From positions 4,001 through 68,000 of the forward strand of contig NW_027437473.1 in assembly GCF_964204645.1 (NCBI RefSeq): a DNA stretch of 64,000 bases. The letters are read 5' to 3'. The DNA comes from Tubulanus polymorphus (lineage: Eukaryota; Animalia; Nemertea). Shown one piece after another: positions 7,022 through 61,668 of this stretch. Each line of letters opens with the position of its first letter. Positions within the stretch are counted from its first letter, which is position 1. The notes beneath the pieces were generated by a model that was not told the origin of the DNA, searched no databases, and was given only the letters and a program-made list of their open reading frames with translations. Both the position numbers and the translations under genes were made by a program.

Positions 7022-8142
7022 AGTCACCACATCTGACTGGTCGCCAGTCACCACAACCTGACTGGTCACTGGTCACCACACCTGACTGGTCGCCAGTCAC
7101 CGAACCTGACTGGTCACTGGTCACCACACCTGACTGGTCACTGGTCACCGCACCTGACTGGTCACCAGTCACCGAACCTGACCGGTCACTGGTCACCACA
7201 CCTGACTGGTCACCAGTCACCGAACCTGACTGGTCACCAGTCACCGAACCTGACTGGTCACTGGTCACCACACCTGACTGGTCACCAGTCACCGAACCTG
7301 ACTGGTCACCAGTCACCGAACCTGACTGGTCACTGGTCACCGCACCTGACTGGTCGCCGGTCGCCACACCTGACTGGTCACCAGTCACCACACCTGACTG
7401 GTCACTGGTCACCACACCTGACTGGTCACCGGTCACCGAACCTGACTGGTCACCAGTCACCGAACCTGACTGGTCACCAGTCACCGAACCTGACTGGTCA
7501 CCAGTCACCGAACCTGACTGGTCATTAGTCACCACACCTGACTGGTCGCCGGTCGCCACACCTGACTGGTCGCCAGTCACCACACCTGCTGACTGGTCGT
7601 CGGTCACCACACCTGACTGGTCACCAGTCACCACACCTGACTGGTCGCCGGTCGCCACACCTGACTGGTCACTGGTCACCGCACCTGACTGGTCGCCTGT
7701 CACCGAACCTGACTGGTCACTGGTCACCACACCTGACTGGTCGCCGGTCGCCACACCTGACTGGTCGCCAGTCGCCACACCTGACTGGTCACCAGTCACC
7801 GAACCTGACTGGTCACCAGTCACCGAACCTGACTGGTCACCAGTCACCACACCTGACTGGTCTTCGGTCGCCACACCTGACTGGTCGCCAGTCACCACAC
7901 CTGCTGACTGGTCGTCGGTCACCACACCTGACTGGTCACCAGTCACCACACCTGACTGGTCGCCGGTCGCCACACCTGACTGGTCACTGGTCACCGCATT
8001 TGACTGGTCGCCTGTCACCGAACCTGACTGGTCAATGGTCACCACACCTGACTGGTCGCCGGTCGCCACACCTGACTGGTCGCCAGTCGCCACACCTGAC
8101 TGGTCACCAGTCACCGCACCTGACTGGTCACCGGTCACCACA
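7022..8142. repeat. 24-bp minisatellite with 12-bp subunits, about 1.1 kb
   Basis: Unit gtcaccacacctgactggtcacca and variants. The paralogous array at 49418-49670 is only ~250 bp. Confidence 0.95.
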
Positions 8143-14200: not shown

Positions 14201-15030
14201 TTTTAGAGCCCATACCTCACCATTATTTAAGTCTGCAAAAATTCTTAAATTGGCAGATATAAACAATTTTCAAATTGGACAATTCATGTATCTATATGTC
14301 AATAACAAGTTACCTGAGATGTTCAATAATTTTTTTAAGACGAATGACGTTGGATACAACACTAGAAACAGCAACAACATCCGCCCTGACTCATTCAAAT
14401 CAAATCTAAAAGGTTTCTCAATAAAAGTCAACGGTCCAAATATTTGGAATATTATGAATGATTCAATTAAAAACTCCCCTTCTAATGAAAGTTTCAAAAA
14501 TCGAACAAAAAACCATTTACTTTCTCATTATTAATCGTTACAGTTTATTCATGAAAATAATAATAATGATAATTATGTATAAGGTGCAATGACCTTCTCA
14601 AATGGTACTTACTTACGCTCATATGATGTATGTATAACCTTGGAATAAACTCCAAGGTATAACTTTATGTATTTATATGTATACATTTTTGTGTGTGTGT
14701 GTGTGTCTATTTGTAAATGTGTGTGAATATATGTGTGTGGTTTTCTTATATGTGGTGGGTGTTTTGGTGTGTGCGTGTGTGCTGCTTGCTTGCGAGTGTG
14801 TGTGCGTGTGTGTGTGTTTGTGTGTATCGTGCGTATTTCATCTCTATTTGTTCCTTTTGGGGTGCCTGATATTACAAGCTCTGCTTTCCTCTGGTTGCCC
14901 TGCTGTTATTTTACATCAGTTTATATATATTTTGTATGAACCAAATTAATCATCTATTGTAATTTTGTCTGGTATCTATTTATTGATGTAAATTATTCAG
15001 GAAATAAATAAATAATAAATAAATAATAAT
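11222..15030 (+). mobile_element. 5'-truncated non-LTR retrotransposon (CR1/L2-group LINE) with an (AAAT/AAT)n tail
   Basis: Intact ORF2, a GT-rich 3' UTR and an aaataaataaataat tail. The empty site in copy II (about 27755-27772, gatcgaat|catcggg) defines the boundaries. Confidence 0.9.
11598..14534 (+). CDS. LINE ORF2: APE-type endonuclease + reverse transcriptase (978 aa)
   Basis: Endonuclease motifs HLNIRS, TETW, GGG, IYRPP, GDFN, TLIDNI, SDHFP. RT motifs NYRPISIL, QFGFR, FLDLSRAFDTV, GVPQGSILGP, FADD. C-terminal YCNIVWG. Confidence 0.95.
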   Translation: MASHAHPEFIVGSSSKYYKDLTQLSKFGLSNFSLFHLNIRSFNKNFENLQLYLHSLCFNFGILAFTETWTKLQHDNKSMYNLPDYESIFISRQDTRGGGIAMFVHNTIKFRILDDFTCVNDTFESLFIEIQLPHNMSKHIVGTIYRPPDASVNNFNTDFLPLLENLTRTGRKCFILGDFNINLFNADSHKPTGDFIFNMLSTGFTNLIDKSTRVTDRSSTLIDNIYSNCYSSFDAISGILIYDISDHFPIFAIMPEIKVNHTSTRTVSYRKMSDHDIARFKRKLIAHDWTHVFNIHDANVAYNSFYDVFYKYYTECFPIINRKFSIYRDKKHGWFSNGLLISLKKKDSLYRRYLSSKLQTDRDIYNRYRNVFNTCIKKAKTLHYNSMLNNARDPKETWKIINDLINRKSSNSKYPDVFEQNGVMYKNNVSIANEFNKCFAQAGPNLANDILPTNKTFFSFLGPPQQNNIFFSPTDSLEIENIVSKFKNSNNTGHDGINQKILKRVIDAISRPLAHILNLSLINGQVPESFKISKILPLFKSGDVSHFSNYRPISILPCISKILEKVVYKRVISFLDKYKILSPCQFGFRKDHSTNMAITVIIDKIINNLDNGKSTIGIFLDLSRAFDTVNHEILLSKLCHYGIRGTPLLWFRNYLSNRFQTVLFKETTSTSYPVFCGVPQGSILGPILFLLYINDLANASSIFNLIMFADDANVFTSHININELTIIVNTELHKLNIWFRANRLSLNLKKTHFMFFSRAKHKHSISIKINNMSISQVSTTKFLGVQVDDQLTWKSHINSICTKLSRFIGIMGRLYGILSKTTLLQLYYSFIYCHLTYCNIVWGNTYPSNLRKLELLQKKAVRIIFKTDFRAHTSPLFKSAKILKLADINNFQIGQFMYLYVNNKLPEMFNNFFKTNDVGYNTRNSNNIRPDSFKSNLKGFSIKVNGPNIWNIMNDSIKNSPSNESFKNRTKNHLLSHY

Positions 15031-15100: not shown

Positions 15101-17796
15101 TCATTTATTGAGTTTTTTAAGTTCTGATATGATGTAATCTCTCGTATAGCGGTCGGTGCTCCTGCAGCGGATACACAGGTCAGAAAGATGCGGAAGATTA
15201 TTGATTAATTCGACGAATAAATCGATATCGTGCTGTGTATTAATCAGCGCGAGTGAACCGTGAAACTCTAAATAACGAATTGATGAGGCGTGTTTTAGTT
15301 GTTTAAAGATGCGATTGTTCTGTTCCGGTCTAACGAGACAGCTATCAATACGGACTTCTCGCAGCTGATTTACCGCATCTGACGATAGATACCGAACAAG
15401 TGCGTCAACATGAGCTTCTGACCACAACACTATTTCTAATACAGTCAGCCGCGGCAGGTGATCTAGAACGCGGTGTATTTGTAAATTAAATCCGTAAATG
15501 CCAAGACGTTTTAGTTTCGGCATTGAACCGACACTATCACTCATTGCTGCACATTCATCTGTCGTTAGTCCGCGCAGTCCGCGCAGTCCGAGCTGAATTG
15601 TTTCGATGTCTGACGATTTTAACGTGTTGTTTAAATCATTCAATTCCTCCGAACCGATCAAATCATTATCGAATATTACTCCACCAAGACATAAGGTTTT
15701 CAAACTCAGAATGATGTTTATCAGCCCTCTGGTTGTATTTCTATCGAGCTGATATTGACACCACGATCCGAGAGATAGATGTTTTATGGATGGATACGAT
15801 TTGTGAATATTGACTAAAATATAACCTAAACGTTCCGCACTAACACCAGTATTAATAAACAGACTCTCCACTGTATTGTGTGTGTTAGTATCAACACTGA
15901 TCAACCGCGCGTCATATTCAGTGTTAATCGAGTGACCTGTCTTAATCCATTCATTATTGAGTTTCTTGTAACATTCACCAGTGTCGTGGATTCCATCTCG
16001 CCGCACAAACCAGTTTAAACTGTAGCTTTTCTTACACATAGTCAAGTACTGATCGGGTTTTGATAACTCGTATGTGTATAATATCATACCGTGAAGACTA
16101 GTGTTACTCGCTATGGCTGTTTCTAATACGCGGTATTCGTCGGGTTTCAGTTCGTGAATACCCTGTATGTAAACTAGCTCGATCTGACATTGTTTGTGTT
16201 CAAGTATTTTTGCGAGCATGTTTATCCGCGATCTGCCATATACAGATACGAACAACATTTTCTGCATGTAGGGAACTATTTCACTAATGGCGTCGTCCGG
16301 CCAGTCGGCTTCATTCAGGCAGATTAACAACTGATCAGATAAAACAGTTCTTTCGGATCGGAGTTCGATGTAGCGTTCGTATTCGGGGATGAGCACCATC
16401 TCCCTAGTAACCGTAACCAAGGACTGGTACTCATCCGCTATTGTGACTGCTTTTAAATGTTCATCTATTAAAGTCTTGAAAAGTTCACCGAGGCCGCGGT
16501 TAAACTTGTAACGATACAGCAGCCCTGACATGAATCTCGGGTATAATTCACCATATTTCACAAGTTCGTCCGGTAGTTGTTCAAACGCGCATTTATTCCA
16601 GGGTATTTCACCACTGTTGTTGAATTGTACGACCGAGTGTACCGCCGCCAGAAATTCCTGCACAGATTTGTGTATGAACCGCAGCTGGACGGAGCGGTCT
16701 GATTTCCGTCGCGGCGACATCTCTTTGCACGTCAAAGCCGTCCTCTTCGATTCGTCGAGTTCAAGACGACTTTCGCTGAAGCTGTTTTGATGCTCGATGA
16801 GCGTCTCATACGCGACTTGACAAATTTGTTTAAGCGCTTTAGAATTTTCGATATTGCGGAAAAAACATTCCTTCGACAACTCGAGGCCCTCGCGTTTACT
16901 GATCAGAAAACATGTCAAATCGATGTAGATATCGGTGAGTTTTGATGGTATCATAATTTCTTCCTTGTCCATATACAGAAAACAAAACATAAGTAGTATC
17001 AGCGGGTTGTAGTAGATACTGTTAAATAAAGGTGGCGCTGCGTCTTTAAGCCTGTAGAATAGCTGATATGGATCGCGCTCGGGGAATTTTCTCTTCATAA
17101 TATCGATGACTTCTTCCTGTTTGAAGCCGGATATCGATACAACAGTGAATTTGGGATCAGTGACGATCATGCTGCCCCCGGACTCACGTGTTGTTATGAC
17201 GATATGCGCTTTCGGTAATTCATTGGTCACGTGTACGATGTCTATTTTCGCTTTATCGCTTTTTAACTCGTCGAAGCCGTCTAGAAAAAATATCGATTTT
17301 TCTGCATTTTCCCGTAAGAATCTCTCAAAACCAATCAGCAGATTCTCTTCGATTACTCGATTCAAAAGATTTTTGTAAATGTACTTATAAATACACGCGT
17401 TATCAGCGGGCAGTTCATTTAACGGTATATAGAATAACATTGCTTTGCTACAAAACTTTGCTACAAACTCCATTGTTGATGTTGTCCAGGTTAACACTTG
17501 ATTAACTACCTGAGTAGTTTTACCCATACCGGGTTCTCCTACGAGGCACACGGGTTTCACATCACTCTCTTTATAAGTGAAAAGTTTCTCGAAATGATCG
17601 GGTAAAATCAATGACTGCTCCTCACTTCCTTCATTTTTCTTCGGGTTTCGTTTTTGGGCTCGAATTTTCGCGTTTTCTTGGGTGAAGAAGTCGTTTAAAT
17701 TGGTGACTTCATCGCTCCACGAAACCTCTTTGTAATTTTCATCATCGATCATTCGTTGATACGTTTCTTTCAGGTTCTTCTGAACTTGATCAACAT
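15101..17796 (-). CDS. NLR paralog 1, terminal exon: NACHT NTPase + helical domains + LRR-like solenoid
   Basis: Walker A GEPGMGKTT, Walker B IFFLDGFDEL, sensor-1 IVITTR, NPLIL, winged-helix FIHKSVQEFLAA, then LxxLxL-type repeats. The phase-1 acceptor ttttatttttacag|AT lies 44 nt upstream of the ORF-track ATG. Confidence 0.92.
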
Positions 17797-20700
17797 CTGT
17801 AAAAATAAAACCAGTTTGAGATTTTTTTAGAATTTCTATGGCGGCTGATTTTGCCTGAAAATCATAGAATCATAGAAAATGTCATGAGCTTAAATTGTAC
17901 AATTGACCGCAGTTACAAAATATGCCTAGGTACCAAGGAACTAATGAGTTATTCTGCTATTCAACGCCCCCTAGTGACCTTAAACAAAAACCAACGAACC
18001 TGAAACTCACCACAATCATACATCATGTCATGAGCTAAAACTTTGCAATTGATTGCGGTGACAAAATATGCGCCAGAAAGAATCTTTCTGTGGGGTCGGG
18101 TTAGCAACAAGTTCGATCAGAGACATTCAAGGTCCCATCTACACGAGTGGAAAAATCCTTTATTTTCAATCTACACGAGGAAAACATTTCCAAAAGTCAC
18201 CTTTAAAAAAGTCGGCTTTTTCACCTGTTTTAAAAATTATACTTAATCTAAAGATAAACGGCTTCGTTGTTTTTGGTGAACTTCACGTGTTACTAAAACG
18301 AGGGCGATATCATCACAGCTCCGCAGTAAATACTGCAAACTACGCCGCGCATCAACATGCAATTTTCAGCACAGGACAAGATGTTTATTAATCTTTCTCA
18401 TCTTTCTCAGAATTTCAGTTTGAGTCAATCGGATGACAACAATTCATTTCATTTAGTTCTTAACTTTTGAAATGAGGATTGGAAAACTGTATTAGTCACG
18501 TGATACACGATGAACCGGTTTTCTGAACACAAATCTTCGCTGCTTACGCGCATAAGAAGTGCCGGTTTTATGTCCTTGCGCATGTAAACCAAATATACTT
18601 TGTTAATTTAGATTTCATCAAGAAAATGTTTCTAGGCCTCGGATATACAATACAATAAGTAGCGGCACACTTCAATGAGTATGAATTACTTTTTTAGAAA
18701 GGCCGATCAGCCATATCGGCGTGCAAAAGTAAAGGGATATCCCGATATGACATCAGGCGGGAAAATAATTATTATTTTACAGAATTCCTTCGATTTCTTC
18801 TTTCAGAAATAAATTCATTCCTTCTTTCAATAAACCCAGGAAAGTGCAACAAATTTCCCTGAACTAATTACAAAGCTACGTATCTTGTGTCAAATAACAG
18901 AAAAAATGGGAAAATGAAGTCGAATCACTAAAACATCGCGGTCGGCGTTGCTACGCGACCCGACCACAAAAATGAAATCAGTTTGAGATATTTTAAGCCG
19001 GGTGTAAGTCGGTTGCGTCGCGATAAGTCTTTTTACAGTTGCCAGGCGCCATTTTTGGGTACCCACCGGGTCCGCATTGTTGAATTCTTGTCCCAATTTT
19101 TTCCCCAGTTTAATTTTCTTATTTCGTTCATATCTTTGGATTTGATTAAGATAGAAATAAGGTAAAAATATCGATGAACTCAGCTGATAATTAACTTTTC
19201 TATGATATCACTCATTCATAAATTTAAAGCAACAATGCGCGCTGGTGAAGTTATAAACATTCATATCCTCTTCCCGATAATTCAACTTGAATTTTTGCTC
19301 ATCTCATTCAAAAGTTCATAATTCTTACAAATCTTAATCTACATTTTCATTATTCAATTTTGAAGGCAGGGTCTGGACTACCGATCCCCAACCCCGAAGT
19401 CTGTCCTTGTTTTACTAGAACTGCCTATATATCTTTATTTGCCATTTTTTTCAAATGACTAAGTGCCCTTATTTCCATAGTTACTGAAAACTTTGATTTC
19501 AATAAAGCAGGGGCCGGTAAAATTGTGAAATTTCCTGATATAAAGAAACGATCGTACTTGCGATTGTCACGTGGTAACTAAAATTGGAACCAAACCACGC
19601 AAAGATAAAAAGTTTCGAATTCTGGCCTATTAGGGAAAATTGGGTTTCAACACAGCTATTTAGTAATAGTCATTGACTTAGAGCTAAAATAACTGGTCTT
19701 TATGGTCAAAGCAGCTTGAAAACAAATGAAAGAGATTAAATTCTCGATAAGAAATTCTACGAATCCTTCAAAAAAAATTATTTCAAAACGCATCTCACAA
19801 CTATTGTGGGTTCGAATCCCAGTATTACTGGATCAAATCGCGCATCTCCCAGTCACTAGAGCGCGTAGCCGTAGGTCTATTGCGACGATCGCGTCGCAGT
19901 AAGTAGAACATGTGCGACTTGCTGCGACTGGCGTCGTTAAAATTTCTATGCTCGCTGATTTGGTCTCCAAATTTCCGGTCGATTGAGAAAAATTAGCTAA
20001 AAGAAAATATTATTTCCAGCTTGTTCGAAAACAGCTTTTATTTGAGCGCTCACTGAAAAAAACTTATAGGTCCTGATATCAACGAGTTGATCTAAGCAAA
20101 TCAACTTTTAAATCAATTCATTGATCGCGTTTACAAAATATGCAGAGTTACCAATATAAATGGAAAATTGTATTCAACTCAATATTTAATTCTCCTGGTG
20201 GGTTGAACAAAAGACCGAAATTCCATGTCCTATGACAATGCTGATAACGACCAAATATCAAGACTAAGTTAAAATCACTAACCCACTATGTGAAAATGAC
20301 ATTTTCCCCAAAAACACCTCTTTTCATCTGTGTGCAAGAAATTACGTTAAAATTGAATGATGAAAAAAGCCTGTCTGATGTGTCAGGAAATCCCCTTTCC
20401 AAAAAATACCAATCACAAATTTCAATAGAAAATACCAAACAATTAGGAAGCTACAGGTCTCGGAATTTAGACCAAAAATAGGTACAAAAAGGTCTCAGGA
20501 CGGCCATCTTGAGTCCGATCGACCCAATTTTAACTTTTTCTTATGCTGATGTGCGCTGTGGAGATATATACTTATAAAAGATAAAGGATATTGATTAAAG
20601 TCATTCCAATTCCAATATTTGATGAATTTTCATTATAAGTAATTTGTTTATTATTAAGATTGAAATTACGTTATTTTCGTTTTTCAATTCTCAAGTTAAT

Positions 20701-21385
20701 AAAATCATTGTAACCTTTAGAAAGTATTAAATCATCATTTCTTTCTTTAAAAGGAGTTTCAAGAATATTCATTATTTTTTCATCTTAATTACCTTTATAA
20801 TCTAAAACTGTATTGAATATTTGAGGATTTCTGGAGCCATTATGGAAAGTATCTATTAGTTCAGTAATTAAATATGTTTCATTTAATAATATTTGATTAA
20901 TTACAGTAATATTATCAATTTTATTTTGTCTTCCATAAACTAAATATGTTGCTGAGATATAATTTTCAATGTTTAACAATCAAGGAATTCATGCCTGAAA
21001 TGTGGCTATAAAAACTGATCGTATGTTTACTAGATTTTGAGTAGGTGTCAGTCACAAGTTCTTCCAATAGCAATAAATATGTATGAACTGGCTGCCTGTC
21101 AGCCATCTTGATTGTGAACAGGGACAATCCGAAATAACTGGATTCCATCTACGGACGAACGGGAAAAAAGTGAAATCAACAGCCAACTGGGACTAAAGTC
21201 CCAACTGGGCTTACACAATCGTACGCCACCTGGTGGATAGAATGTCTTGATATAATTTTCTATCATTTTAGTTAAAGATTTAGAACGATCTTTAGAGACA
21301 TGGTCAAAGACTTCGGACCCGTCTTATGATTTAGGATCACATTTGGACTCAAGCACGAGTTCTGATGGTAGAAATCTATAATTAC

Positions 21386-21520
21386 CGAGATTCTCAGCAG
21401 GTCTGTCGATAGTTTGTGTATCTCCCTGGTAAACATTCATCGTATTATTGTCACCGATTTGAACCATTTTCGATTGATTTACATTTATTCCTGGATTACT
21501 CTGTGCCATAGTACCACAAA
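21386..21520 (-). CDS. NLR1 cassette exon A1 (135 nt, phase 1-1), canonical RHIM: (V)CGTMAQSNPGINVNQSKMVQIGDNNTMNVYQGDTQTIDRPAENL
   Basis: Borders tgtttgtcag| and ctcg|gtaatt. The core VQIGDNN resembles RIPK3 VQVGDNN, and the exon is in frame with the NACHT exon. Confidence 0.8.
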
Positions 21521-22021
21521 CTGACAAACAGGATTTAGAATTCAGTCATTTTATCTCAATAAGTGCAGCACATTTTTCCTGACCTAATTGTTTTGTCCAG
21601 TATTTACACAATCAGCCTCTACTCATATTCAGACTGAAGTTTTCTTTATTTCCGCTAAAAGTCGTTTTTCCGATAAACTGTTTATATGTTTTTATATTTA
21701 CCCTGGACTGATAAACAAACTGTGTCACCAGATCTGACTGTTTTTATTCCTACTCGAGACTGATAAACAAACTGTGTCACCAGATGTGATAAGAGACCAT
21801 AATTCAAAATACCGATTATATAACCAGACCCTGACAGTATTAGTCAAAGATTTAAAACAATCGAGTTGGTGGGTCCATTTTGGTCCTCAGAATTTTGCCA
21901 AAGACAATGTATTACTTTCGCCTCAAAACTTTATACCGGTTTTATATGCGAGATCACATTTAGACTCAAGTCACATCATTCTGTACTGAACTGAACTCTG
22001 ATGGTTAAAATCTATAATTAC

Positions 22022-22165
22022 CGAGATTCTCAGCAGGTCTGGTGCTGGCTTGTGTAACTGCGGGGATAATTTGAGTCACTGTCGTCGTATTATTGTCACC
22101 CCTTACACTTAAGTTAGAATTGTCTGCATTTATTCCTGGATTACTCTCCGCCATAGTACCGTTTA
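22022..22165 (-). CDS. NLR1 cassette exon A2 (144 nt, phase 1-1), divergent RHIM-like: MAESNPGINADNSNLSVRGDNNTTTVTQIIPAVTQASTRPAENL; ATG at 22154
   Basis: Borders tttttcag| and ctcg|gtaatt, homologous to A1, with an actATGg Kozak-like context. A2+A1+NACHT exon gives 987 aa. Confidence 0.7.
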
Positions 22166-22782
22166 CTGAAAAACAGAATTTAGAATTCAGTCATTTTATC
22201 TCAACAAGTGCAGCACATTTTTCTGACCTAATTGTTTTGTCAAGTTTTTACACAATTAGCCTTTATCAGGGTTCTATGGTGGCTGATAAGGGCCAAATGC
22301 ATTAATTAATAACACGACCTCGATTACAGAAAAACGCAAATCGAAACCTACCTGCTACCGCGCAAAAACGAACTTTTCGTAAAAACGAAAAACCGCGCAA
22401 AAACGAAATATTATAGAGCAAAAACGAATATTTTCGTTTTCAATTTGTCAATCGGTTTGTCTTATTGTTACAAGACACATCTATGCTATATATAGACTCA
22501 CTCAGGTGATTACTAACAAACACAGCCATATATAGTACTCTAACCTTTATTCGCACACACAAAATGTCAAAAATACAAAAAAATAACTTTTTGTTTTTTT
22601 TTTCATAAAAATCAAGACAAATACTGGCTATGATTTTTTTTAAACATACGAATAAATAGCGACTTGAAACTAAATGAATACACCCGCTACGAACATGTGA
22701 CATCTGAATATGAATAGGGTCTATTCACATTCAGACGTCACGAGTTGAAAGTGACAAAATCGAGGAAATGAACAGCAACAAT

Positions 22783-24410: not shown

Positions 24411-24790
24411 TTGTGAGAGTGTATCTTTATGAAAACACCCCCTCCCCTCCTACCTAAATCACAATCGCGTTCTGTTCACAAAAATGACAAGAATATTTAA
24501 ACAACATACCTCTCAATATGACAAAACTGTAAGATGAATATATACTGTTTCAAAACCGTACACGTCCACAGGACTCACTACTGCTCAATAATAAACCATA
24601 CTAAACAAAAAAACTCCTCTCGATGGCAAAATCATCAACTGGTTGATGATGGCCATAAATTGGTTGAAGTAGAATAAGTCTGAACTGCGCACTTATACCG
24701 ATCGATATAAAACCGCACCCCTGTCACGTGATCTATTTTTGGATATGATCGTCACGTGTCCTGTAAAACCGGTCCTGTAAAATTTACAGT

Positions 24791-26990
<2,200 letters not shown>

Positions 26991-27809
26991 TGAAAACTGT
27001 GACTGACTCCGGACGCGCGGCCTTCCGTTCCGTGTGCAAAACCATACTGAAGCAAATCACCCAAAATATCTGAATGAAAACAGAACATTTACTGTTTGTC
27101 AATGAATCGTGAAAAGGAATTTCATTTAATTTTTTGAAATGACATAAGCCGCAATTACGGGGAGACGATTTGAGACAATTTAGAAATGGAAACTTGTGTA
27201 AGATTAAACCGGGCCGTCCATTTTAGAAACGGAAACTTGGGTAAGATTAGACCGGGCCCAGTCTATAGAAATGGAAACTTGTGGTCCAATCTCCTCACAA
27301 TGAAAAATGCCCAGCTCCAAATAAACACCACACAACAACCTGTATAAACTAGATGAGGCGTCTTTATTTTCAGTAGAATATATTGGGCTTGAGGGGACTG
27401 CCCAAGCCCCAAGCGTACATTATTTTCAGTAGAATATATTGGGCTTGAGGGGACTGCCCAAGCCCTAAGCGTACATTATTTTCAGTAGAATATATTGGGC
27501 TTGAGGGGACTGCCCAAGCCCTAAGCGTACATTATTCTTAGCAGAATATAGGTCGAGACCTTCTCAGTCCCGTACAGTGAATAAACATTGGTTAACAATA
27601 AAATAGACACGAAATACACAATTATATAAACAATTGACTACAGCGAGCAAGATAAAAATAGTGAAACGATTAAAATCAGTAAGAAGAGAACAAAAATTGA
27701 AAAGATACATGAAGTAATAATTAGTCCATATCTCACACTTGACGATATCTTGTGTGAGATCGAATCATCGGGTTTTTCAAATTGATTGAATAAATTCTTG
27801 ATTTATTTA

Positions 27810-30523
27810 CTATATCTGTATTTCTACTCTCAGTCTTTTATTGAGTTTTTTAAGTTCTGATTTGATGTAATCTCTCGTCGTATAGCGGTCGGTGCTCCAG
27901 CAGAGGATATACAGGTCAGAAAGATGCGGAAGATTATTGATTAATTCGACGATTAATTTGACGAATAAATCGATATCGTGCTGTGTATTAATCGGCGCGA
28001 TTGGTGAACGGTGAAACTCTAAATAACGAATTGATGAGACGTGTTTTAGTTGTTTAAAGATACGATTGTTCTGTACCGGTCTATCGGGATAGCTATAAAT
28101 ACGGACTTGTCGCAGCTGATTTACCGCATCTGACGATAGATACCGAACAAGTGCGTCAACATCAGCTTCTGACCGCAACACTATTCCTAATACAGTCAGC
28201 CGCGGCAGGTGATCTAGAACGCGGTGTTTTTGTAAATTAAATCCGTTAATGACAAGACGTTTTAGTTTCGGCATTGAACCGACACTATCACTCATTGCTG
28301 CACATTCATCTGTCGTTAGTCCGAGCCGTCCGAGCTGAATTGTTTCGATGTGTGAAGATTTTATCGTGTTGTTTAAATCATTCCATTCCTCCGAACCGAT
28401 CAAATTCTTATCGAATATTAATCCACTAAGACATAAGGTTTTCAAACTCGGAATGATGTTTATCAGCCCTCTGATTGTATTTCTATCGAGCTGATATTCC
28501 CACAGAGATCTGAGAGATAGATGTTTTATGGATGGATACGATTTGTGAATATTGACTAAAATATAACCTAAACGTTCCGCACTAACACGAGGATCAATAA
28601 ACAGACTCTCCACTGTATTGTGTGTGTTAGTATCAACACTGATCAACCGCGCGTCATCTTCAGTGTTAATCACGTGACTTGTAATAATCCATTCATTATT
28701 GAGTTTCTTGTAACATTCACCAGGGTCTAATCCACCTCGCTCCACAAACCAGTTTATACTGTTGCTCTTCTGACACATAGTCAAGAACTGATCGCGTATT
28801 GATGACCTGTATGTAACTAATATCATACCGTGAAGACTAGTGTTACTCGTTATGGCTGTTTCTAATACGCGGCATTCGTCGGGTTCCAGTTCCTTATAAC
28901 TGTGAATAATGTAAACTAGCTCGATCTGACATTGTTTGTGTTCGAGTATTTTTGCGAGCATGTTTATCCACGATCTGCTATATACAGATACGAACAACAT
29001 TTTCTGCATGTAGGGAACTATTTCACTAATGGCGTCGTCCGGCCAGTCGGCTTCATCCATGCAGATTGACAACTGTTCAGATAAAACAGTTCTTTCGGAT
29101 CGGAGTTCGAAGTAGCGTTCGTAATCGGGAATGAGCGCCATCTCCCTAGTAACCATATCCAAGGAATCGTACGTCATACTATCCGCTATTGTGACTGCTT
29201 TTAAATGTTCATCTATTAAAGTCTTGAAAAGTTCACCGAGGCCGCGGTTATACTTGTAACGATACAGCAGCCCTGACATGAATCTCGGGTATAATTCACC
29301 ATATTTCACAAGTTCGTCCTGTAGTTGTTCAAACGCGCATTTATTCCAGGGTATTTCACCGCTGTTGTTGAATTGCACGACCGAGTGTACCGCCGCCAGA
29401 AATTCGTGCACAGATTTGTGTATGAACCGTAGCTGGACGGAGCGGTCTGATCTCCGTCGCGGCGACACCTCTTTACACGTCAAAGCCGTCCTTTTCGATT
29501 CGTCGAGTTCAAGACGACTTTCGGTGAAGCTGTTTTGATGCTTGATGAGCGTCTCATACGCGACTTGACAAATTTCTTTAAGCGCTTCGGAATTTCCGAT
29601 ATTGCGGAAAAAACATTCCTTCGACAACTCGAGGCCCTCGCGTTTACTGATCAGAAAACATGTCAAATCGATGTAGATATCGGTGAGTTTTGATGGTATC
29701 ATAATTTCTTCCTTGTCCATATACAGAAAACAAAACATATGTAGTATCAGCGGGTTGTAGTAGATACTTTCAAATAAAGGTGACGCTGCGGCTTTAAGCT
29801 TGTCGAATAGCTGTTCTGGATTGGGGAATTTTCTCTTCATAATATCGATGACTTCTTTCTGTTTGAAGCCGGATATCGATACAACAGTGAATTTGGGATC
29901 AGTGACGATCATGCTGCCCCCGGACTCACGTGTTGTTACGACGATATGCGCTTTCGGTAATTTATTGGTCACGTGTACGATGTATTCCTTCGCTTTATCG
30001 CTTTTTAACTCGTCGAAGCCGTCTAGAAAAAATATCGATTTTTCTGCATTTTCCCGTAAGAATCTCTTAAAACCAATCGGCAAATGCTCTTCGATTTCTC
30101 GACTCAAAAGATCTTCGTAAATGTACTTATAAATACACGCGTTATCAGCGGGCAGTTCATTTAACGGTATATAGAATAACATAGGAAATCTTTTCAGAAA
30201 CGGTGATCGCTCCCATGACAACACTTGATTAACTACCTGAGTTGTTTTACCCATACCGGGTTCACCTACGAGGCACACGCGTTTCATAGCACGCTCGTCA
30301 TAAGTGAAAAGCTTCTCGAAATGATCGGGTAAAATCACTGGCTGCTCCTCACTTCCTTCATTTTTCTTCGGGTTTCGTTTTCGGGGTCGAATTTTCGCGT
30401 GTTCTCGGGTGAAGAAGTCGTTGAAATTGACGAATTCATCGCTCCACGAAACCTCTTTGTAATTTTCATCATCGATCATTCGTTTATACGTTTCTTTCAG
30501 GCTCTTCCGAACTTGATCAACAT
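27810..30523 (-). CDS. NLR paralog 2, terminal exon: NACHT + LRR-like
   Basis: Same NACHT motifs (GEPGMGKTT, FFLDGFDEL, FIHKSVHEFLAA). Phase-1 acceptor tttttacag|ATGTTGATCAAGTT. Confidence 0.92.
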
Positions 30524-34683: not shown

Positions 34684-34779
34684 CGAGATTCTCAGCAGGT
34701 CTATCGACGGTTTGCTCCTCGTCATCGCGAACATTTTCTGCATTTATTCCTGGATTACTCTGTGCCAAAGCACCACAAA
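34684..34779 (-). CDS. NLR2 cassette exon B1 (96 nt, RHIM-null spacer): (V)CGALAQSNPGINAENVRDDEEQTVDRPAENL
   Basis: AG/GT borders, phase 1-1, no stop codon. Confidence 0.65.
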
Positions 34780-35815
34780 CTGAAAAACAGGATTTAGAAT
34801 TCAGTCATTTTATCTCAACAAGTGCAGCACATTTTTCCTGACCTAATTGTTTTGTCCAGTATTTACACAATCAGCCTCTACTCATATTCAGACTGAAGTT
34901 TTCTTTGTTTCCGCTACTGATAAAGGATAATGGAATGTAGGAAAAAAATGGCCGAGGAAAATTTATGAGAACTACTGACAATGTTAATAAAACATTAAGC
35001 CTTCAAATTAATGACATCATATATTTTTCATGGGGCTTAAAACAATTAAAATCGGTATTAATGAGATCAGAAATTTGATTAACTTACATTTCATTTCATT
35101 ACAGGATTGCTACATTGGAGAGTCATTGAATCCTATGTCTGAACTCAACTAACCCATGATGAGTTCACTCCTACATGTAGCAATCCTCCACCTAATATCA
35201 ATTATATCTGATATTGTGCAACTCGATACTAACGACTATAGCCGCGATCGCGGGGAGACGTTTTGACCCGGGCTGCAAAATTGGTACGGATCAGGTCCGA
35301 GTCAAATTGGCCTTAGAGATTGCATTCACACGCAAACCTCTCACTTAATACTAAACAAAGCGAAGTGAGTCACTACCGGAACCAGTTGACCCGCACCTGG
35401 TCCGACGTTTTTGGTCGGGCCAAATTGGGCCCAGGCCCATTTTGAATTATAGGGTTAGGATTGAAACGTGATAGTATCTGATCACGGTAACTTTCACTCT
35501 TATTTTACTGTTAACAGTATTTATACTGTTAATCTGTTTTTATTCCTACTCGAGACTGATAAACAAACTGTGTCACCAGATGTGATAAGAGACCATAATT
35601 CAAAATACCGATTATATAACCAGACCCTGACAGTATTAGTCAAAGATTTAAAACAATCGGGTTGGTGGGTCCATTTTGGTACTCAGAATCTTTAAAGACA
35701 ATATATTACTTTCGCCTCAAAACTTTACACCGGATTTATATGCGAGATCACATTTAGACTCAAGTCACATCATTCTGTACTGAACTGAACTCTGATGGTT
35801 AAAATCTATAATTAC

Positions 35816-35953
35816 CGAGATTCTCAGCAGGTCTGTCGCTGGCTTGAGTAACTGCGTGGATAATTTGATTCACTGTATTATTGTCACCGATTATACTTAA
35901 ATTAGAATTGTCTGCATTTATTCCTGGATTACTCGCCGCCATAGTAACGTTTA
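35816..35953 (-). CDS. NLR2 cassette exon B2 (138 nt, divergent RHIM-like): (V)NVTMAASNPGINADNSNLSIIGDNNTVNQIIHAVTQASDRPAENL
   Basis: AG/GT borders, phase 1-1, homologous to A2. Confidence 0.7.
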
Positions 35954-36287
35954 CTGAAAAACAGAATTTAGAATTCAGTCATTATATCTCAACAAGTGCA
36001 GCACAGTTTTCCTGAAAGAAATATGCTGGTTGGCCAAATTGTAAATTAGTACATATCACATGCAGAAGACCAGATAACAATGATAAAAGCTTACTATAAT
36101 ACAAGTGTAGCAACCCAATCTCAATAATTACAATAATGAAATGTATGAATTTGTGAGCAGTATTCGCCTGTTAATAATAAGACATAAACTACATGAAACA
36201 CATTCTAGCCACAAATATTACCAGTCTCGCTAGCCATATACTCATTCTGTACTGAACTGAACTTTGATGGTTAAAATCTATAATTAC

Positions 36288-36383
36288 CGAGATTCTCAGC
36301 AGGTCTATCGACGGTTTGCTCCTCGTCATCGCGAACATTTTCTGCATTTATTCCTGGATTACTCTGTGCCATAGTACCCAGTA
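36288..36383 (-). CDS. NLR2 cassette exon B3 (96 nt spacer): (V)LGTMAQSNPGINAENVRDDEEQTVDRPAENL
   Basis: AG/GT borders, phase 1-1. Confidence 0.65.
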
Positions 36384-37227
36384 CTGAAAAACAGGATTTA
36401 GAATTCAGTCATTTCATCTCAACAAGTGCAGCACATTTTTCCTGACCTAATTGTTGTGTCCAGTATTTACACAATCAGCCTCTACTCATATTCAGACTGA
36501 AATTTTCTTTGTTTCCGCTACTGATAAAGGATAATAGACTAAACTTCAACATCTCCATCACAAGTTCGCATTTGGAACGTTAGATAATTTGACCTCCTTA
36601 GAGATTTCCGGCGACGTTACAAAACACAGTTGAAATTGTTTATTAGGTTTTTATCGTGTGAAAAACGCATTCAGATAACGCGCCAGGGACGGTCATCGAC
36701 TGAGATATCAAATCACAAGCCACAACAGGTCGCCATCCGCAAATCACTGACTTTATTTTCTAAAAATGCCTGAAGAATACTGTCTTAATTTGCTGGATTA
36801 GTTTTAAAGAGGCGCACACTCGACAATCTGACATCGAAATGTAACCAGCATTGGTTTCTTTCAAGGATTTTACGTAGAAAAAAAACTGTGTCAACGAGAA
36901 GACTTGTATCTTCTAAATCACTGAATACTGTTTTAACCTGCCGGAGGAAGGGGCGCATACTCGACAGTCTTACATTGGAATGAATGTAATTAGGATCAGT
37001 TTTTTCTTTCATGGATTTTAATGTAAAAAATAAATGATTCTAAAAGTTGATTTCATTGACATTCATTACGCAGGAAGGGAAGCTGCTTTGTTAAAGTCAG
37101 GCATAAACGTGTGACTCAGTCACACGTCTCAAAACTTTACACCAGTTTTATATACGAGATCACATTTAGACTCAAGTCACATCATTCTGTACTGAACTGA
37201 ACTCCGATGATTAAAATCTATAATTAC

Positions 37228-37323
37228 CGAGATTCTCAGCAGGTCTATCGACGGTTTGCTCCTCGTCATCGCGAACATTTTCTGCATTCATTCCTGGATT
37301 ACTCTGTACCAAAGCACCACAAA
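37228..37323 (-). CDS. NLR2 cassette exon B4 (96 nt spacer): (V)CGALVQSNPGMNAENVRDDEEQTVDRPAENL
   Basis: AG/GT borders, phase 1-1. Confidence 0.65.
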
Positions 37324-38325
37324 CTGAAAAACAGGATTTAGAATTCAGTCATTTTATCTCAACAAGTGCAGCACATTTTTCCTGACCTAATTGTTTTGTC
37401 CAGTATTTACACAATCAGCCTCTACTCATATTCAGACTGAAGTTTTCTTTGTTTCCGCTACTGATAAAGGATAATGGAATGTAGGAAAAAAATGGCCGAG
37501 GAAAATTTATGAGAACTACTGACAATGTTAATAAAACATTAAGCCTTCAAATTAATGACATCATATATTTTTCATGGGGCTTAAAACAATTAAAATCGGT
37601 ATTAATGAGATCAGAAATTTGATTAACTTACATTTCATTTCATTACAGGATTGCTACATTGGAGAGTCATTGAATCCTATGTCTGAACTCAACTAACCCA
37701 TGATGAGTTCACTCCTACATGTAGCAATCCTCCACCTAATATCAATTATATCTGATATTGTGCAACTCGATACTAACGACTATAGCCGCGATCACGGGGA
37801 GACGATTTGACCCGGGCGGCAAAATTGGTACGGATCAGGTCCGAGTCAAATTGGCCTTAGAGATTGCATTCACACGCAAACCTCTCACTTGATACTAAAC
37901 AAAGCGAAGTGAGTCACTACCGGAACCAGTTGACCCGCACCTGGTCCGACGTTTTTGGTCAAATTGGGCCCAGGTCCATTTTGAATTATAGGGTTAGGAT
38001 TGAAACGTGATAGTATCTGATCACGGTAACTTTCACTCTTATTTTACTGTTAACAGTATTTATACTGTTAATCTGTTTTTATTCCTACTCGAGACTGATA
38101 AACAAACTGTGTCACCAGATGTGATAAGAGACCATAATTCAAAATACCGATTATAGAACCTGACCCTGACTGTTTTAGTCAAAGATTTAAAACAATCGGG
38201 TTGGTGGACAATATATTACTTTCGCCTCAAAACTTTACACCGGATTTATATACGAGATCACATTTAGACTCAAGTCACATCATTCTGTACTGAACTGAAC
38301 TCCGATGGTTAAAATCTATAATTAC

Positions 38326-38421
38326 CGAGATTCTCAGCAGGTCTATCGACGGTTTGCTCCTCGTCATCGCGAACATTTTCTGCATTTATTCCTGGATTAC
38401 TCTGTGCCATAGTACCCAGTA
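38326..38421 (-). CDS. NLR2 cassette exon B5 (96 nt spacer, same type as B3)
   Basis: AG/GT borders, phase 1-1, located 2038 bp from B3. Confidence 0.65.
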
Positions 38422-39286
38422 CTGAAAAACAGGATTTAGAATTCAGTCATTTTATCTCAACAAGTGCAGCACATTTTTCCTGACCTAATTGTTGTGTCCA
38501 GTATTTACACAATCAGCCTCTACTCATATTCAGACTGAAATTTTCTGTTTCCGCTACTGATAAAGGATAATAGACTAAACTTCAACATCTCCATCACAAG
38601 TTCGCATTTGGAACGTTAGATAATTTGACCTCCTTAGAGATTTCCGGCGACGTTACAAAACACAGTTGAAATTGTTTATTAGGTTTTTATCGTGTGAAAA
38701 ACGCATTCAGATAACGCGCCGGGGTCGGTCATCGACTGAGATATCAAATCACAAGCCACAACAGGTCGCCATCCGCAAATCACTGACTTTATTTTCTAAA
38801 AATGCCTGAAGAATACTGTCTTAATTTGCTGGATTAGTTTTAAAGAGGCGCACACTCGACAATCTGACATCGAAATGTAACCAGCATCGGTTTCTTTCAA
38901 GGATTTTACGTAGAAAAAAAACTGTGTCAGCAAAAGACAGACTTATGTTAGATGTTGCAACGAGAAGACTTGTATCTTCTAAATCACTGAATACTGTTTT
39001 AACCTGCCGGAGGAAGGGGCGCATACTCGACAGTCTTACATTGGAATGAATGTAATTAGGATCAGTTTTTTCTTTCATGGATTTTAATGTAAAAAATAAA
39101 TGATTCTAAAAGTTGATTTCATTGACATTCATTGCGCAGGAAGGGAAGCTGCTTTGTTAAAGTCAGGCATAAACGTGTGACTCAGTCACACATCTCAAAA
39201 CTTTTCTCTGGTTTTATATACGAGATCACATTTTGACTCGAGTCACATCATTCTGTACTGAACTGAACTCTGATCTCAATAATTAC

Positions 39287-39382
39287 CGAGATTCTCAGCA
39301 GGTCTATCGACGGTTTGCTCCTGGTCATCGCGAACATTTTCTGCATTTATTCCTGGATTACTCTCCGCCATAGTAACGTTTA
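39287..39382 (-). CDS. NLR2 cassette exon B6 (96 nt, likely first coding exon, ATG at 39371): MAESNPGINAENVRDDQEQTVDRPAENL
   Basis: AG/GT borders and actATGg context. The model including all exons gives 1106 aa. Confidence 0.65.
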
Positions 39383-53006: not shown

Positions 53007-55876
53007 TTAATCAGATTCATCTGATGAATCAGATGAATCAGATGAATCTGATAATACAGATGCTGGGTAGTAAACCCCTATTATTACTCTCAGTCTTTTA
53101 TTGAGTTTTTTAAGTTCTGATATGATGTAATCTCTCGTCGTATCGGGGTCGGTGCTCCAGCAGCGGATATACAGGTCAGAAAGATGCGGAAGATTATTGA
53201 TTAATTCGACGATTAATTTGCCGAATAAATCGATATCGTGCTGTGTATTAATCAGCGCGAGTAAACCGTGAAACTTTAAACAACGAATTGATGAGACGTG
53301 TTTTAGTTGTTTAAAGATGCGATTGTTCTGTTCCGGTCTATCGAGACGGCTATCAATACGGACTTGTATCAGCTGATTTACCGCATCTGTTGATAGATAC
53401 CGAACAAGTGCGTCAACATCAGCTTCTGAACACAACACTATTTCTAATACAGTCAGCCGCGGCAGGTGATCTAGAACGCGGTGTTTTGGTAAATTAGATC
53501 CGTTAATGACAAGACGTTTTAGTTTCTGCATTGAACCGACACTATCACTCATTGCTGCACATTGATCTGTCGTTAGTTCGCGCAGTTCGCTCAGTTCGAG
53601 CAGTTCGCGCAGTTCGCGCAGTCCGCGCAGTCCGCGCAGTCCGCGCACTCCGAGCTGAATTGTTTCGATGTCTGACGATTTTATCGTGTTGTTTAAATCA
53701 TTCAATTCCTCCGAACCGATCAAATCTTTATCGAATATTACTCCAAAAAGACATAAGGTTTTCAAACTCGGAATGATGTTTATCAGCCCTCTGATTGTAT
53801 TTCTATCGAGCTGATATTCCCACAGCGATCTGAGATATAGATGTTTTATGGATGGATACGATTCGTGAATATTGACTAAAATATAACCTAAACGTTCCGC
53901 ACATATACGAGGATCAATAATCAGACTCTCCACTGTATTGTGTGTGTTAGTATCAACACTGATCAACCGCGCGTCATATTCAGTGTTAATCTCGTGACTT
54001 GTAATAATCCATTCATTATTGAGTTTCTTGTAACATTCACAAATGTCGTCGAGGTATCTACCTCGCCGCACAAACCAGTTTATACTGTTGCTCTTCTTAC
54101 ACATAGTCAAACACTGATCGGGTTTTGATGACCCGTATGTATCTAATATCATACCGTGAAGACTAGTGTTACTCGCTATGGCTGTTTCTAATACGCGGTA
54201 TTCGTCGGGTTTCAGTATCATATAACCCTTTATGTAAACTAGCTCGATCTGACATTGTTTGTGTTCGAGTATTTTTGCGAGCATGTTTATCCACGATCTG
54301 CTATAATATGCAGATACGAACAACATTTTCTGCATGTAGTGAACTATTTCACAAATGGCGTCGTCCGGCCAGTCGGCTTCATTCATGCAGATTAACAACT
54401 GATCAGATAAAACAGTTCTTTCGGATCGGAGTTCGATGTAGCGTTCGTAATCGGGGATGAGCGCCATATCTGCCGATTCCCTAGTAACCGTAACCAAGGA
54501 CTCTAACCTATCCACTATTGTGACTGCTTTTAAATGTTCATCTATTAAAGTCTTGAAAAGTTCACCGAGGCCGCGGTTATACTTGTAACGATACAGCAGC
54601 CCTGCCATGAATCTCGGGTATAATTCACCATATTTCACAAGTTCGTCCGGTAGTTGTTCAAACGCGCATTTATTCCAGGGTGTTTTCCAGGGTATTTCAT
54701 TACTGTTGTTGAATTGTACGACCGAGTGTACCGCCGCCAGAAATTCGTGCACAGATTTGTGTATGAACCGCAGCTGGACGGAGCGGTCTGATTTCCGTCG
54801 CGGCGACACCTCTTTGCATGTCAAAGCCGTCCTTTTCGATTCGTCGAGTTCAAGACGACTTTCGGTGAAGCTGTTTTGATGCTCGATGAGCGTCTCATAC
54901 GCGACTTGACAAATTTCTTTAAGCGCTTCGGAATTTCCGATATTGCGGAAAAAACATTCCTTCGACAACTCGAGGCCCTCGCGTTTACTGATTAGAAAAC
55001 ATGTCAAATCGATGTAGATATCGGTGAGTTTTGATGGTATCGTAATTTCTTCCTCGTCCATATACAGATAACGAAACATAAGTAGTATCAGCGGGTTGTA
55101 GTAGATACTGTTAAATAAAGGTGACGCTGCGTATCTAAGCTTGTCGAATAGCTGATATGGATCGCGCTTGGGGAATTTTCTCTCCAGAATTTCGATGACT
55201 TCTTTCTGTTTGAAGCCGGATATCGATACAACAGTGAATTTGGGATCAGTGACGATCATGCTGCCCCCGGACTCACGTGTTGTTATGACGATATGCGCTT
55301 TCGGTAATTCATTGGTCACGTGTACGATGTCTTTCTTCGCTTTATCACTTTTCAACTCGTCGAAGCCGTCTAGAAAAAATATCGATTTTTCTGCATTTTC
55401 CCGTAAGAATCTCTCAAAACCAATCAGCAGATTCTCTTCGATTACTCGATATAAAAGATTTTTGTAAATGTACTTATAAATACACGCGTTATCAGCGGGC
55501 AGTTCATTTAACGGTATATAGAATAACATAGGAAACTTTGCTACAAACTCCGTTGTTGATGTTGTCCAGGTTAACACTTGATTAACTACCTGAGTAGTTT
55601 TACCCATACCGGGTTCACCTACAAGGCACACGGGTTTCACATCACTCTCTTTATAAGTGAAAAGTTTCTCGAAATGATCGGGTAAAATCAATGACTGCTC
55701 CTCACTTCCTTCATTTTTCTTCGGGTTTCGTTTTTGGGCTCGAATTTTCGCGTTTTCTTGGGTGAAGAAGTCGTTTAAATTGGTGACTTCATCGCTCCAC
55801 GAAACCTCTTTGTAATTTTCATCATCGATCATTCGTTGATACGTTTCTTTCAGGTTCTTCTGAACTTGATCAACAT
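53007..55876 (-). CDS. NLR paralog 3, terminal exon: NACHT + LRR-like with an acidic Ser/Asp tail
   Basis: Same NACHT motifs, with the phase-1 acceptor at 55877/55876. The ORF-track N-terminal extension to 55940 is intronic read-through. Confidence 0.92.
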
Positions 55877-59447: not shown

Positions 59448-59582
59448 CGAGATTCTCAGCAGGTCTGTCGATAGTTTGTGTATCTCCAAGGTAAACATTC
59501 ATCGTATTATTGCCACCCATTTGAACCATTGATTCATTTACATTCACTTTATTTACATTACTCTGTACCAAAGCACCACAAA
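59448..59582 (-). CDS. NLR3 cassette exon C1 (135 nt, RHIM): (V)CGALVQSNVNKVNVNESMVQMGGNNTMNVYLGDTQTIDRPAENL
   Basis: AG/GT borders, phase 1-1, VQMG core. Confidence 0.8.
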
Positions 59583-60601: not shown

Positions 60602-60697
60602 CGAGATTCTCAGCAGGTCTATCGACGGTTTGCTCCTCGTCATCGCGAACATTTTCTGCATTTATTCCTGGATTACTCTGTGCCATAGTACCCAGTA
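60602..60697 (-). CDS. NLR3 cassette exon C2 (96 nt spacer)
   Basis: AG/GT borders, phase 1-1, same type as B3/B5. Confidence 0.65.
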
Positions 60698-61572
60698 CTG
60701 AAAAAACAGGATTTAGAATTCAGTCATTTCATCTCAACAAGTGCAGCACATTTTTCCTGACCTAATTGTTTTGTCCAGTATTTACACAATCAGCCTCTAC
60801 TCATATTCAGACTGAAATTTTCTTTGTTTCCGCTACTGATAAAGGATAATAGACTAAACTTCAACATCTCCATCACAAGTTCGCATTTGGAACGTTAGAT
60901 AATTTGACCTCCTTAGAGATTTCCAGCGACGTTACAAAACACAGTTGAAATTGTTTATTAGGTTTTTATCGTGTGAAAAACGCATTCAGATAACGCGCCG
61001 GGGTCGGTCATCGACTGAGATATCAAATCACAAGCCACAACAGGTCGCCATCCGCAAATCACTGACTTTATTTTCTAAAAATGCCTGAAGAATACTGTCT
61101 TAATTTGCTGGATTAGTTTTAAAGAGGCGCACACTCGACAATCTGACATCGAAATGTAACCAGCATCGGTTTCTTTCAAGGATTTTACGTAGAAAAAAAA
61201 CTGTGTCAGCAAAAGACAGACTTATGTTAGATGTTGCAACGAGAAGACTTGTATCTTCTAAATCACTGAATACTGTTTTAACCTGCCGGAGGAAGGGGCG
61301 CATACTCGACAGTCTTACATTGGAATGAATGTAATTAGGATCAGTTTTTTCTTTCATGGATTTTAATGTAAAAAATAAATGATTCTAAAAGTTGATTTCA
61401 TTGACATTCATTACGCAGGAAGGGAAGCTGCTTTGTTAAAGTCAGGCATAAACGTGTGACTCAGTCACACGTCTCAAAACTTTACACCGGTTTTATATAC
61501 GAGATCACATTTTGACTCGAGTCACATCATTCTGTACTGAACTGAACTCCGATGGTTAAAATCTATAATTAC

Positions 61573-61668
61573 CGAGATTCTCAGCAGGTCTATCGACGGT
61601 TTGCTCCTCGTCATCGCGAACATTTTCTGCATTTATTCCTGGATTACTCTCCGCCATAGTAACGTTTA
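61573..61668 (-). CDS. NLR3 cassette exon C3 (96 nt, likely first coding exon, ATG at 61657)
   Basis: AG/GT borders and actATGg context. C3+C2+C1+NACHT exon gives 1061 aa. Confidence 0.65.

Follow-up and report, generated by a model that had tools for sequence, protein, structure and literature searches.

A RHIM-like cassette exon upstream of a NACHT-LRR exon in the nemertean Tubulanus polymorphus

Signalling by NLR receptors through amyloid motifs has been described in fungi, in the NWD2/HET-S pair and in the PNT1/HELLP pair with its RHIM-like PP motif (PMC4344463, PMC7885112). In animals, Kajava et al. (2014) described the amphioxus RHIM-NACHT-repeat protein BF82280, reported invertebrate tandem RHIMs as well, and drew the connection with NWD2/HET-s (PMC4262963). 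Their report bears out the remark in an initial annotation of the DNA studied here that RHIM-like motifs are known in invertebrates. Amphioxus bbtTICAM, a relative of TRIF/TICAM1, is among the proteins cited within PMC9444067. The core tetrad of published RHIMs reads (V/I)-Q-(V/I/L/C)-G, in a motif of ~18-22 residues (PMC9444067). The RHIM-NACHT layout is thus already known from amphioxus, and what differs at the nemertean locus described below is a shuffled, alternatively spliced array of cassette exons. A limited literature search returned neither a report of RHIM-NACHT proteins from nemerteans or any other spiralian group nor one that describes the cassette-exon arrangement.

We analysed a window of 64,000 nt, which makes up most of a 68-kb unplaced contig of the nemertean Tubulanus polymorphus, taking its exons one by one rather than as a joined, spliced protein. 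The window contains three paralogous NACHT-LRR exons, all on the minus strand (genes A, B and C; Table 1), each with a phase-1 acceptor in front of the residues ..DVDQV... Their NACHT scores lie between 48 and 56 bits, and the LRR part is weakly matched (in gene A, LRR_14 at 21.3 bits, under its cut-off of 40, and a weak LRR_2). An intact 978-residue non-LTR retrotransposon ORF with endonuclease and reverse transcriptase (11598-14534, plus strand) lies just 3' of the gene A NACHT exon, and retroelement Gag-like ORFs with DUF1759 and a CCHC zinc knuckle are found at 1255-2329 (minus strand). A 391-codon open frame at 6966-8141 (minus strand) encodes a 7-residue tandem repeat (..TGDQSGV..), which Pfam matches to the phage gp5 C-terminal repeat, probably on account of its repetitive composition. 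Two repeats lie between genes A and B, one a long microsatellite of the (TA)n type (24756-25031) and the other a tandem repeat of 51 nt (26658-26993).

Table 1. Positions of the exons and motifs discussed in the text. Plain numbers are window positions; positions elsewhere in the assembly carry the prefix G000. A slash marks an exon border.
Feature	Position	Strand	Remarks
Type-c cassette exon with RHIM-like motif, gene A	21386..21520	(-)	LOC141914658; splice sites, frame and Pfam RHIM as in text
Core tetrad codons V-Q-I-G	21453..21464	(-)	in gene A type-c cassette; tetrad as defined in PMC9444067
Type-b cassette, gene A	22022..22165	(-)	..SNLSVRGDNNT.., without Q-I-G tetrad; start codon of isoform X1 (P0016)
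NACHT-LRR exon, gene A	15101..17796	(-)	acceptor ...ttttacag/AT, phase 1; stop 15101-15103; Pfam NACHT (PF05729) 48.4 bits, cut-off 26.7; Walker A GEPGMGKT in ORF; weak LRR_14
NACHT-LRR exon, gene B	27810..30523	(-)	annotated within LOC141914657
Six cassettes 5' of gene B	34684..39382	(-)	five type a, one type b
Type-a cassettes, gene B	34684-34779, 36288-36383, 37228-37323, 38326-38421, 39287-39382	(-)	
Type-b cassette, gene B	35816-35953	(-)	
NACHT-LRR exon, gene C	53007..55876	(-)	LOC141914657
Type-c cassette, gene C	59448..59582	(-)	non-canonical VQMG, without start Met; within annotated CDS P0001 and P0019
Two type-a cassettes 5' of gene C	60602-60697, 61573-61668 (60602..61668)	(-)	
TICAM-like protein, contig C3	G000:C3:26755416-26756684 (L031 1084-2352)	(-)	single exon: TICAM-type TIR, coiled coil, RHIM, acidic ..KNDETERKTVD.. 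repeat tail
RHIM-like motif, contig C8	G000:C8:4552373-4552456	(-)	exon end of large protein
RHIM-like motif, contig C7	G000:C7:3977726-3977800	(-)	exon with predicted hydrophobic transmembrane helix directly before motif

The exon of interest, which we refer to as the RHIM exon, is separated from the gene A NACHT-LRR exon by an intron of 3,589 nt and translates on the minus strand as ..NPGINVNQSKMVQIGDNNTMNVYQGD... It is 135 nt long, free of stop codons and in phase 1 at both ends, with AG/GT splice sites (acceptor ...ctgtttgtcag/, donor CTCG/gtaattat). The initial annotation had placed a RHIM-pattern peptide here, in the exon next to the NACHT exon, and both statements hold: its coordinates coincide exactly with one minus-strand exon, and that exon lies immediately 5' of the NACHT exon. 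The two are joined in the model XP_074662016.1, from the 3' end of the RHIM exon (...DRPAENL) to the start of the NACHT exon (DVDQ...). This intron also contains, at 19833-19970 on the minus strand, an additional, incomplete copy of the stretch normally found just 5' of the NACHT acceptor (..AKSAAIEIL..).

The VQIG of the cassette satisfies the published tetrad definition and its flanks are RHIM-like. Comparison with Pfam RHIM (PF12721), the check that had been suggested for this peptide, gave 21.0 bits (E 2.3e-4), and scanning the entire 268-Mb assembly in six frames gave 21.9 bits for the same cassette (genome-wide E 0.064), in each case 1-2 bits above the gathering cut-off of 20. The description of the motif as canonical therefore stands for the tetrad, while the profile score is marginal. 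Only five sites in the genome passed the cut-off, namely the gene A cassette, its two near-identical copies on C6 and, within unrelated proteins, two more, and none passed in 14 control genomes. On the strength of this E value, the five passing sites and the empty controls, the match is more than chance, although marginal against the curated threshold. Additionally, profile A1, derived from the motifs of the worm and run against 177,635 distinct PDB sequences, placed three RIPK3, two RIPK1 and one TRIF entry as its best six (best E 0.002), a result that is partly circular in that 3 of the 7 rows of the profile came from the RHIM model. The cassette alone, searched with phmmer, found nothing relevant in PDB. 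The resemblance to RIPK3 noted in the initial annotation, which had quoted the RIPK3 string correctly, is thus recovered by the profile. Taking the Pfam score, the genome scan and the PDB search together with the tetrad, we assign the motif to the RHIM class at the level of sequence.

A different view of these matches would be that they arise by chance or convergence in a disordered linker rich in N, Q and G, the cassettes being flexible spacers with no amyloid role. The marginal Pfam score would fit this, as would the lack of any motif in most cassettes (type a) and the variability of the tetrad among paralogues, where VQMG, SIIG, SVRG and RKSG are found. However, three of the five passing sites in the genome are exons of this one type, at the genome-wide E value given above; RHIM proteins alone stood at the top of the reciprocal PDB search; the cassette resembles the RHIMs in the TICAM-like protein and others described below over ~25 residues; and VQIG recurs in divergent paralogues. 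We consider a chance origin quite improbable.

The window carries 11 cassette exons of three types, the RHIM exon among them, and all share a common acceptor, donor and frame. All begin with ..(T)MA(Q/E)SNPGIN.. and end with ..DRPAENL. Type a, to which the majority belong, is a short acidic unit without the motif; type b has ..SNLS(I/V)(I/R)GDNNT.. ahead of a second hydrophobic stretch; and type c is the RHIM-like unit, with VQIG in gene A and VQMG in gene C. The canonical tetrad is present in 1 of the 11, the gene A type-c cassette, and the C6 twin of the gene C VQMG cassette scores 13.4 bits on Pfam RHIM. The initial annotation had treated the RHIM exon as a single exon beside NACHT, which is right as to its placement but misses its membership of a symmetric array with non-RHIM variants. 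Since every unit is of phase 1-1, any combination of cassettes keeps the frame, and each joint forms a Val codon. In the NCBI models the cassettes are indeed combined in differing ways (P0001, P0006, P0019, P0005, P0002 and P0003), the gene B cassettes at 34684-37323, for example, being joined in frame in P0006 and P0019. The cassettes had also been considered purely as alternative first exons, which is ruled out by the strong acceptors of all of them and by the annotated coding sequences that string them in frame.

One NCBI model couples gene C cassettes to the gene B NACHT exon. This is isoform X1 of LOC141914657 (P0019; 27810-61668, minus strand), which takes in three gene C cassettes, four gene B cassettes and the gene B NACHT exon and skips the gene C NACHT exon. 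Two NLRs in tandem are in this way annotated as a single locus that has alternative NACHT exons, which could result from read-through, from an artefact of the model or from a leader array that the two genes really share.

How gene A itself uses the RHIM exon bears directly on the RHIM-NACHT-LRR architecture that had been proposed for it. That architecture is sound in so far as the motif lies on the N-terminal side of the NACHT-LRR exon, but the annotated isoforms of LOC141914658 do not carry it: X1 (P0016) passes straight from the type-b cassette to the NACHT exon and skips the RHIM exon, X2 (P0004) starts with MNVYQGD.., at the Met of ...NNTMNV... downstream of VQIG, and continues into the NACHT exon, and VQIG is contained in no annotated CDS of the gene. 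The YQGD residues identify the RHIM exon as the source of the X2 start, so that the donor of the RHIM exon is used in the X2 model. Because there is no AG between the ATG of ..KMVQ.. and that of ..TMNV.., the 5' end of X2 would most likely lie within the RHIM exon. Three small DNA-like contig sets and one doubtful RNA run were compared with this part of the locus (17300-22300, 5,001 nt); the RNA run contained nothing of the region, and the reads assembled into fragmented genomic contigs and cross-matches to paralogues. Elsewhere, type-c cassettes of the VQMG form do sit inside annotated CDS, both in gene C and in a paralogue on contig C8.

These observations raise the possibility that the RHIM is real by descent and that the gene A cassette is little used or decaying, the normal products being type-b only or starting past the tetrad, with no RHIM signalling. 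The two isoform models agree with this, and so does the polypyrimidine tract of the exon, which has a G where all other cassettes in the window have a T. Further in its favour, the exon carries no sign of purifying selection, and the other genes of this unplaced contig are near-identical to a C8 locus that has no VQIG copy. Against decay, the frame is open, the splice sites are intact and the phase is symmetric, the ATG of the exon has A at -3 and G at +4, the X2 model employs the donor of the exon, and both C6 copies keep VQIG and the same layout as gene A. On balance we regard a little-used or decaying cassette as unlikely.

The genome holds ~18 intact NLR paralogues and several broken ones. 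All three VQIG cassettes lie 2.5-3.6 kb 5' of an intact NACHT exon, and when the four VQMG cassettes are included the distance to an NLR-family NACHT exon is 2.5-4 kb throughout. More distant paralogues on contig C9 (~57-66% identical) have annotated N-termini composed of 21-residue units, each with ..EIVQIGDK.., and the recurrence of the motif in these divergent copies indicates that a V-Q-I-G N-terminus is old in this NLR family. The period of these units is the same as that of the HET-s repeats, and Pfam RHIM gave no score on them. One C9 exon (G000:C9:3605409-3606120; L018 937-1689, plus strand; also L017; annotated as P0013) consists of approximately eleven such units in tandem, each ..NPGINAENAEIVQIGDK.., and lies ~330 nt 5' of a NACHT exon. 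A word search with the type-c region of P0005 matched P0005 and P0001 and nothing else. Two further arrangements were seen among the relatives. In the paralogous NLR models P0007 and P0010 (C6), ..DVDQV..-NACHT-LRR is preceded by a signal peptide, by weak matches to Ig-like domains and by a transmembrane segment, so that these may represent NLRs anchored in the membrane or, alternatively, gene models that have been fused. On contig C1, where no NACHT exon of the family was found, type-b-like cassettes occur three in tandem at a spacing of 2,079 nt (G000:C1:19744861-19749150, minus strand).

Comparison of the type-c copies of genes A and C gave 15 differences at 132 exon sites and 6 at 386 sites of the 3' intron flank (Fisher p = 8e-6), and pN/pS between type-c copies ranges from 0.8 to 3.8. 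The changes are concentrated upstream of the tetrad, and ..NNTMNVY.GDTQTIDRPAENL is near-invariant. This pattern fits diversifying selection or mosaic recombination, and does not support purifying selection on the cassette as a whole. An exon that evolves faster than its flanking intron might also be expected of bait: the cassette would then be an integrated decoy resembling host RHIMs rather than an output module, and pathogen inhibitors that bind RHIMs, or pathogen proteases that cleave them, would trigger the NLR by acting on it. Pathogens do target RHIMs (PMC9444067). However, the N-terminal position is that of the output modules of fungal and amphioxus NLRs, and mosaic recombination among cassettes could also give the faster divergence; we judge a decoy to be very improbable indeed.

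If the cassette is instead an output module, it would need RHIM-bearing partners, and the search for these, also proposed at the outset, was productive in part: it yielded the three candidates on contigs C3, C8 and C7, while the best-scoring candidates of the scan included neither a RIPK-like kinase nor a HeLo-like protein that carries a RHIM. A single ORF of 422 residues on C3 holds the top RHIM site of the genome (26.2 bits). A profile of the N-terminus of this ORF hits the TIR domains of TICAM2 (6e-15) and TICAM1 (3e-7), and an alignment-based model (pLDDT 86), used in place of a single-sequence AF2 model of the N-terminus (pLDDT 34), found TIR domains only in a fold search. After the TIR comes a long helix and then ..PGTVINIYHAKGVQLGNSNTMTV... 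We conclude from the profiles and the predicted fold that this is a putative TICAM/TRIF-like adaptor of the form TIR-coiled-coil-RHIM. RHIMs are also present in 6 of 73 relatives of the protein from other organisms. A word search with the ORF found no relatives, nor an annotated protein for the ORF itself, which may therefore be unannotated. The C8 candidate ends an exon of a large protein with ..CQCVQLGNGNTMEV.. and no Pfam family was found in its exons; in the C7 candidate the motif reads ..KPGIIHVNKCKNVQIGNNNFATVY... The cassette and the C3, C8 and C7 proteins have the pattern P-G-(x)-I-x-V...V-Q-[IL]-G-x-x-N...V in common over ~25 aligned residues, and a genome search with a worm-specific profile gave no further RHIM classes. 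A complex prediction with two cassettes and two TICAM-like RHIM segments returned a score of 0.03, which weighs neither way on binding.

Our favoured reading, which we hold to be probable with some reservation, is that in a nemertean NACHT-LRR receptor the exon serves as an N-terminal RHIM-type cross-beta (amyloid) output cassette. In receptors that include it, oligomerisation of NACHT driven by ligand would gather several RHIMs, and these would nucleate the RHIM fold and template the matching RHIM in a protein acting downstream. The C3 TICAM/TRIF-like adaptor, whose motif is very similar to that of the cassette, would be the best candidate recipient. Such a mode would be comparable to that of fungal NWD2 with HET-S and to the proposal made for the amphioxus RHIM-NACHT protein, and inclusion of the cassette would decide whether a given transcript bears the RHIM signalling motif. 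Extending this, alternative inclusion could select an amyloid 'address' motif (RHIM-type c, the related type b or the acidic spacer a) and so wire one sensor to different RHIM adaptors, and the fast evolution of the exon would on this view reflect diversifying specificities of templating, or an arms race against RHIM mimics made by pathogens; we offer this larger scheme as speculation and rather doubt it.

Should the cassette prove to be translated and amyloid-forming, NLR-RHIM signalling would extend from fungi (with the RHIM-like PP motif) and amphioxus to spiralians, which would support the idea that STAND receptors and prion-like signal transfer have been linked since early times and in many lineages. 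A new element would be that splicing decides whether and how the receptor connects to RHIM adaptors. The system is tractable, offering 44-residue peptides, a natural series of tetrads (VQIG, VQMG, SIIG, SVRG) and a matching TICAM-like candidate partner.

Of the described systems, amphioxus BF82280, which we compared by description and not by sequence, resembles the worm gene in being a STAND/NACHT receptor with a RHIM at the usual death-fold position. Unlike BF82280, the worm gene belongs to a spiralian phylum, Nemertea, and its motif occupies a separate symmetric cassette exon amid non-RHIM variants, with isoforms that differ in their cassettes. The motif shares the core tetrad, G-x-x-N and alternating hydrophobic and polar flanks with the RHIMs of RIPK3, RIPK1, TRIF and ZBP1, and ..NIYNCSGVQVGDNNYL.. 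of RIPK3 aligns with the cassette; in contrast to these vertebrate proteins, the host is an NLR rather than a kinase or adaptor and the motif is N-terminal, the likeness being one of sequence. The C3 candidate partner follows TRIF/TICAM1, including amphioxus bbtTICAM, in having a TICAM-type TIR and then a RHIM. Finally, as in fungal NWD2/HET-S and PNT1/HELLP, a short N-terminal motif of an NLR matches a motif on separate proteins (those on C3, C8 and C7). Unlike in the fungal pairs, however, the candidate partners of the worm receptor are encoded on other contigs rather than by adjacent genes, the best of them is a TIR adaptor rather than a HeLo/HELL pore former, the others are without a Pfam domain, and the motif is exon-modular.
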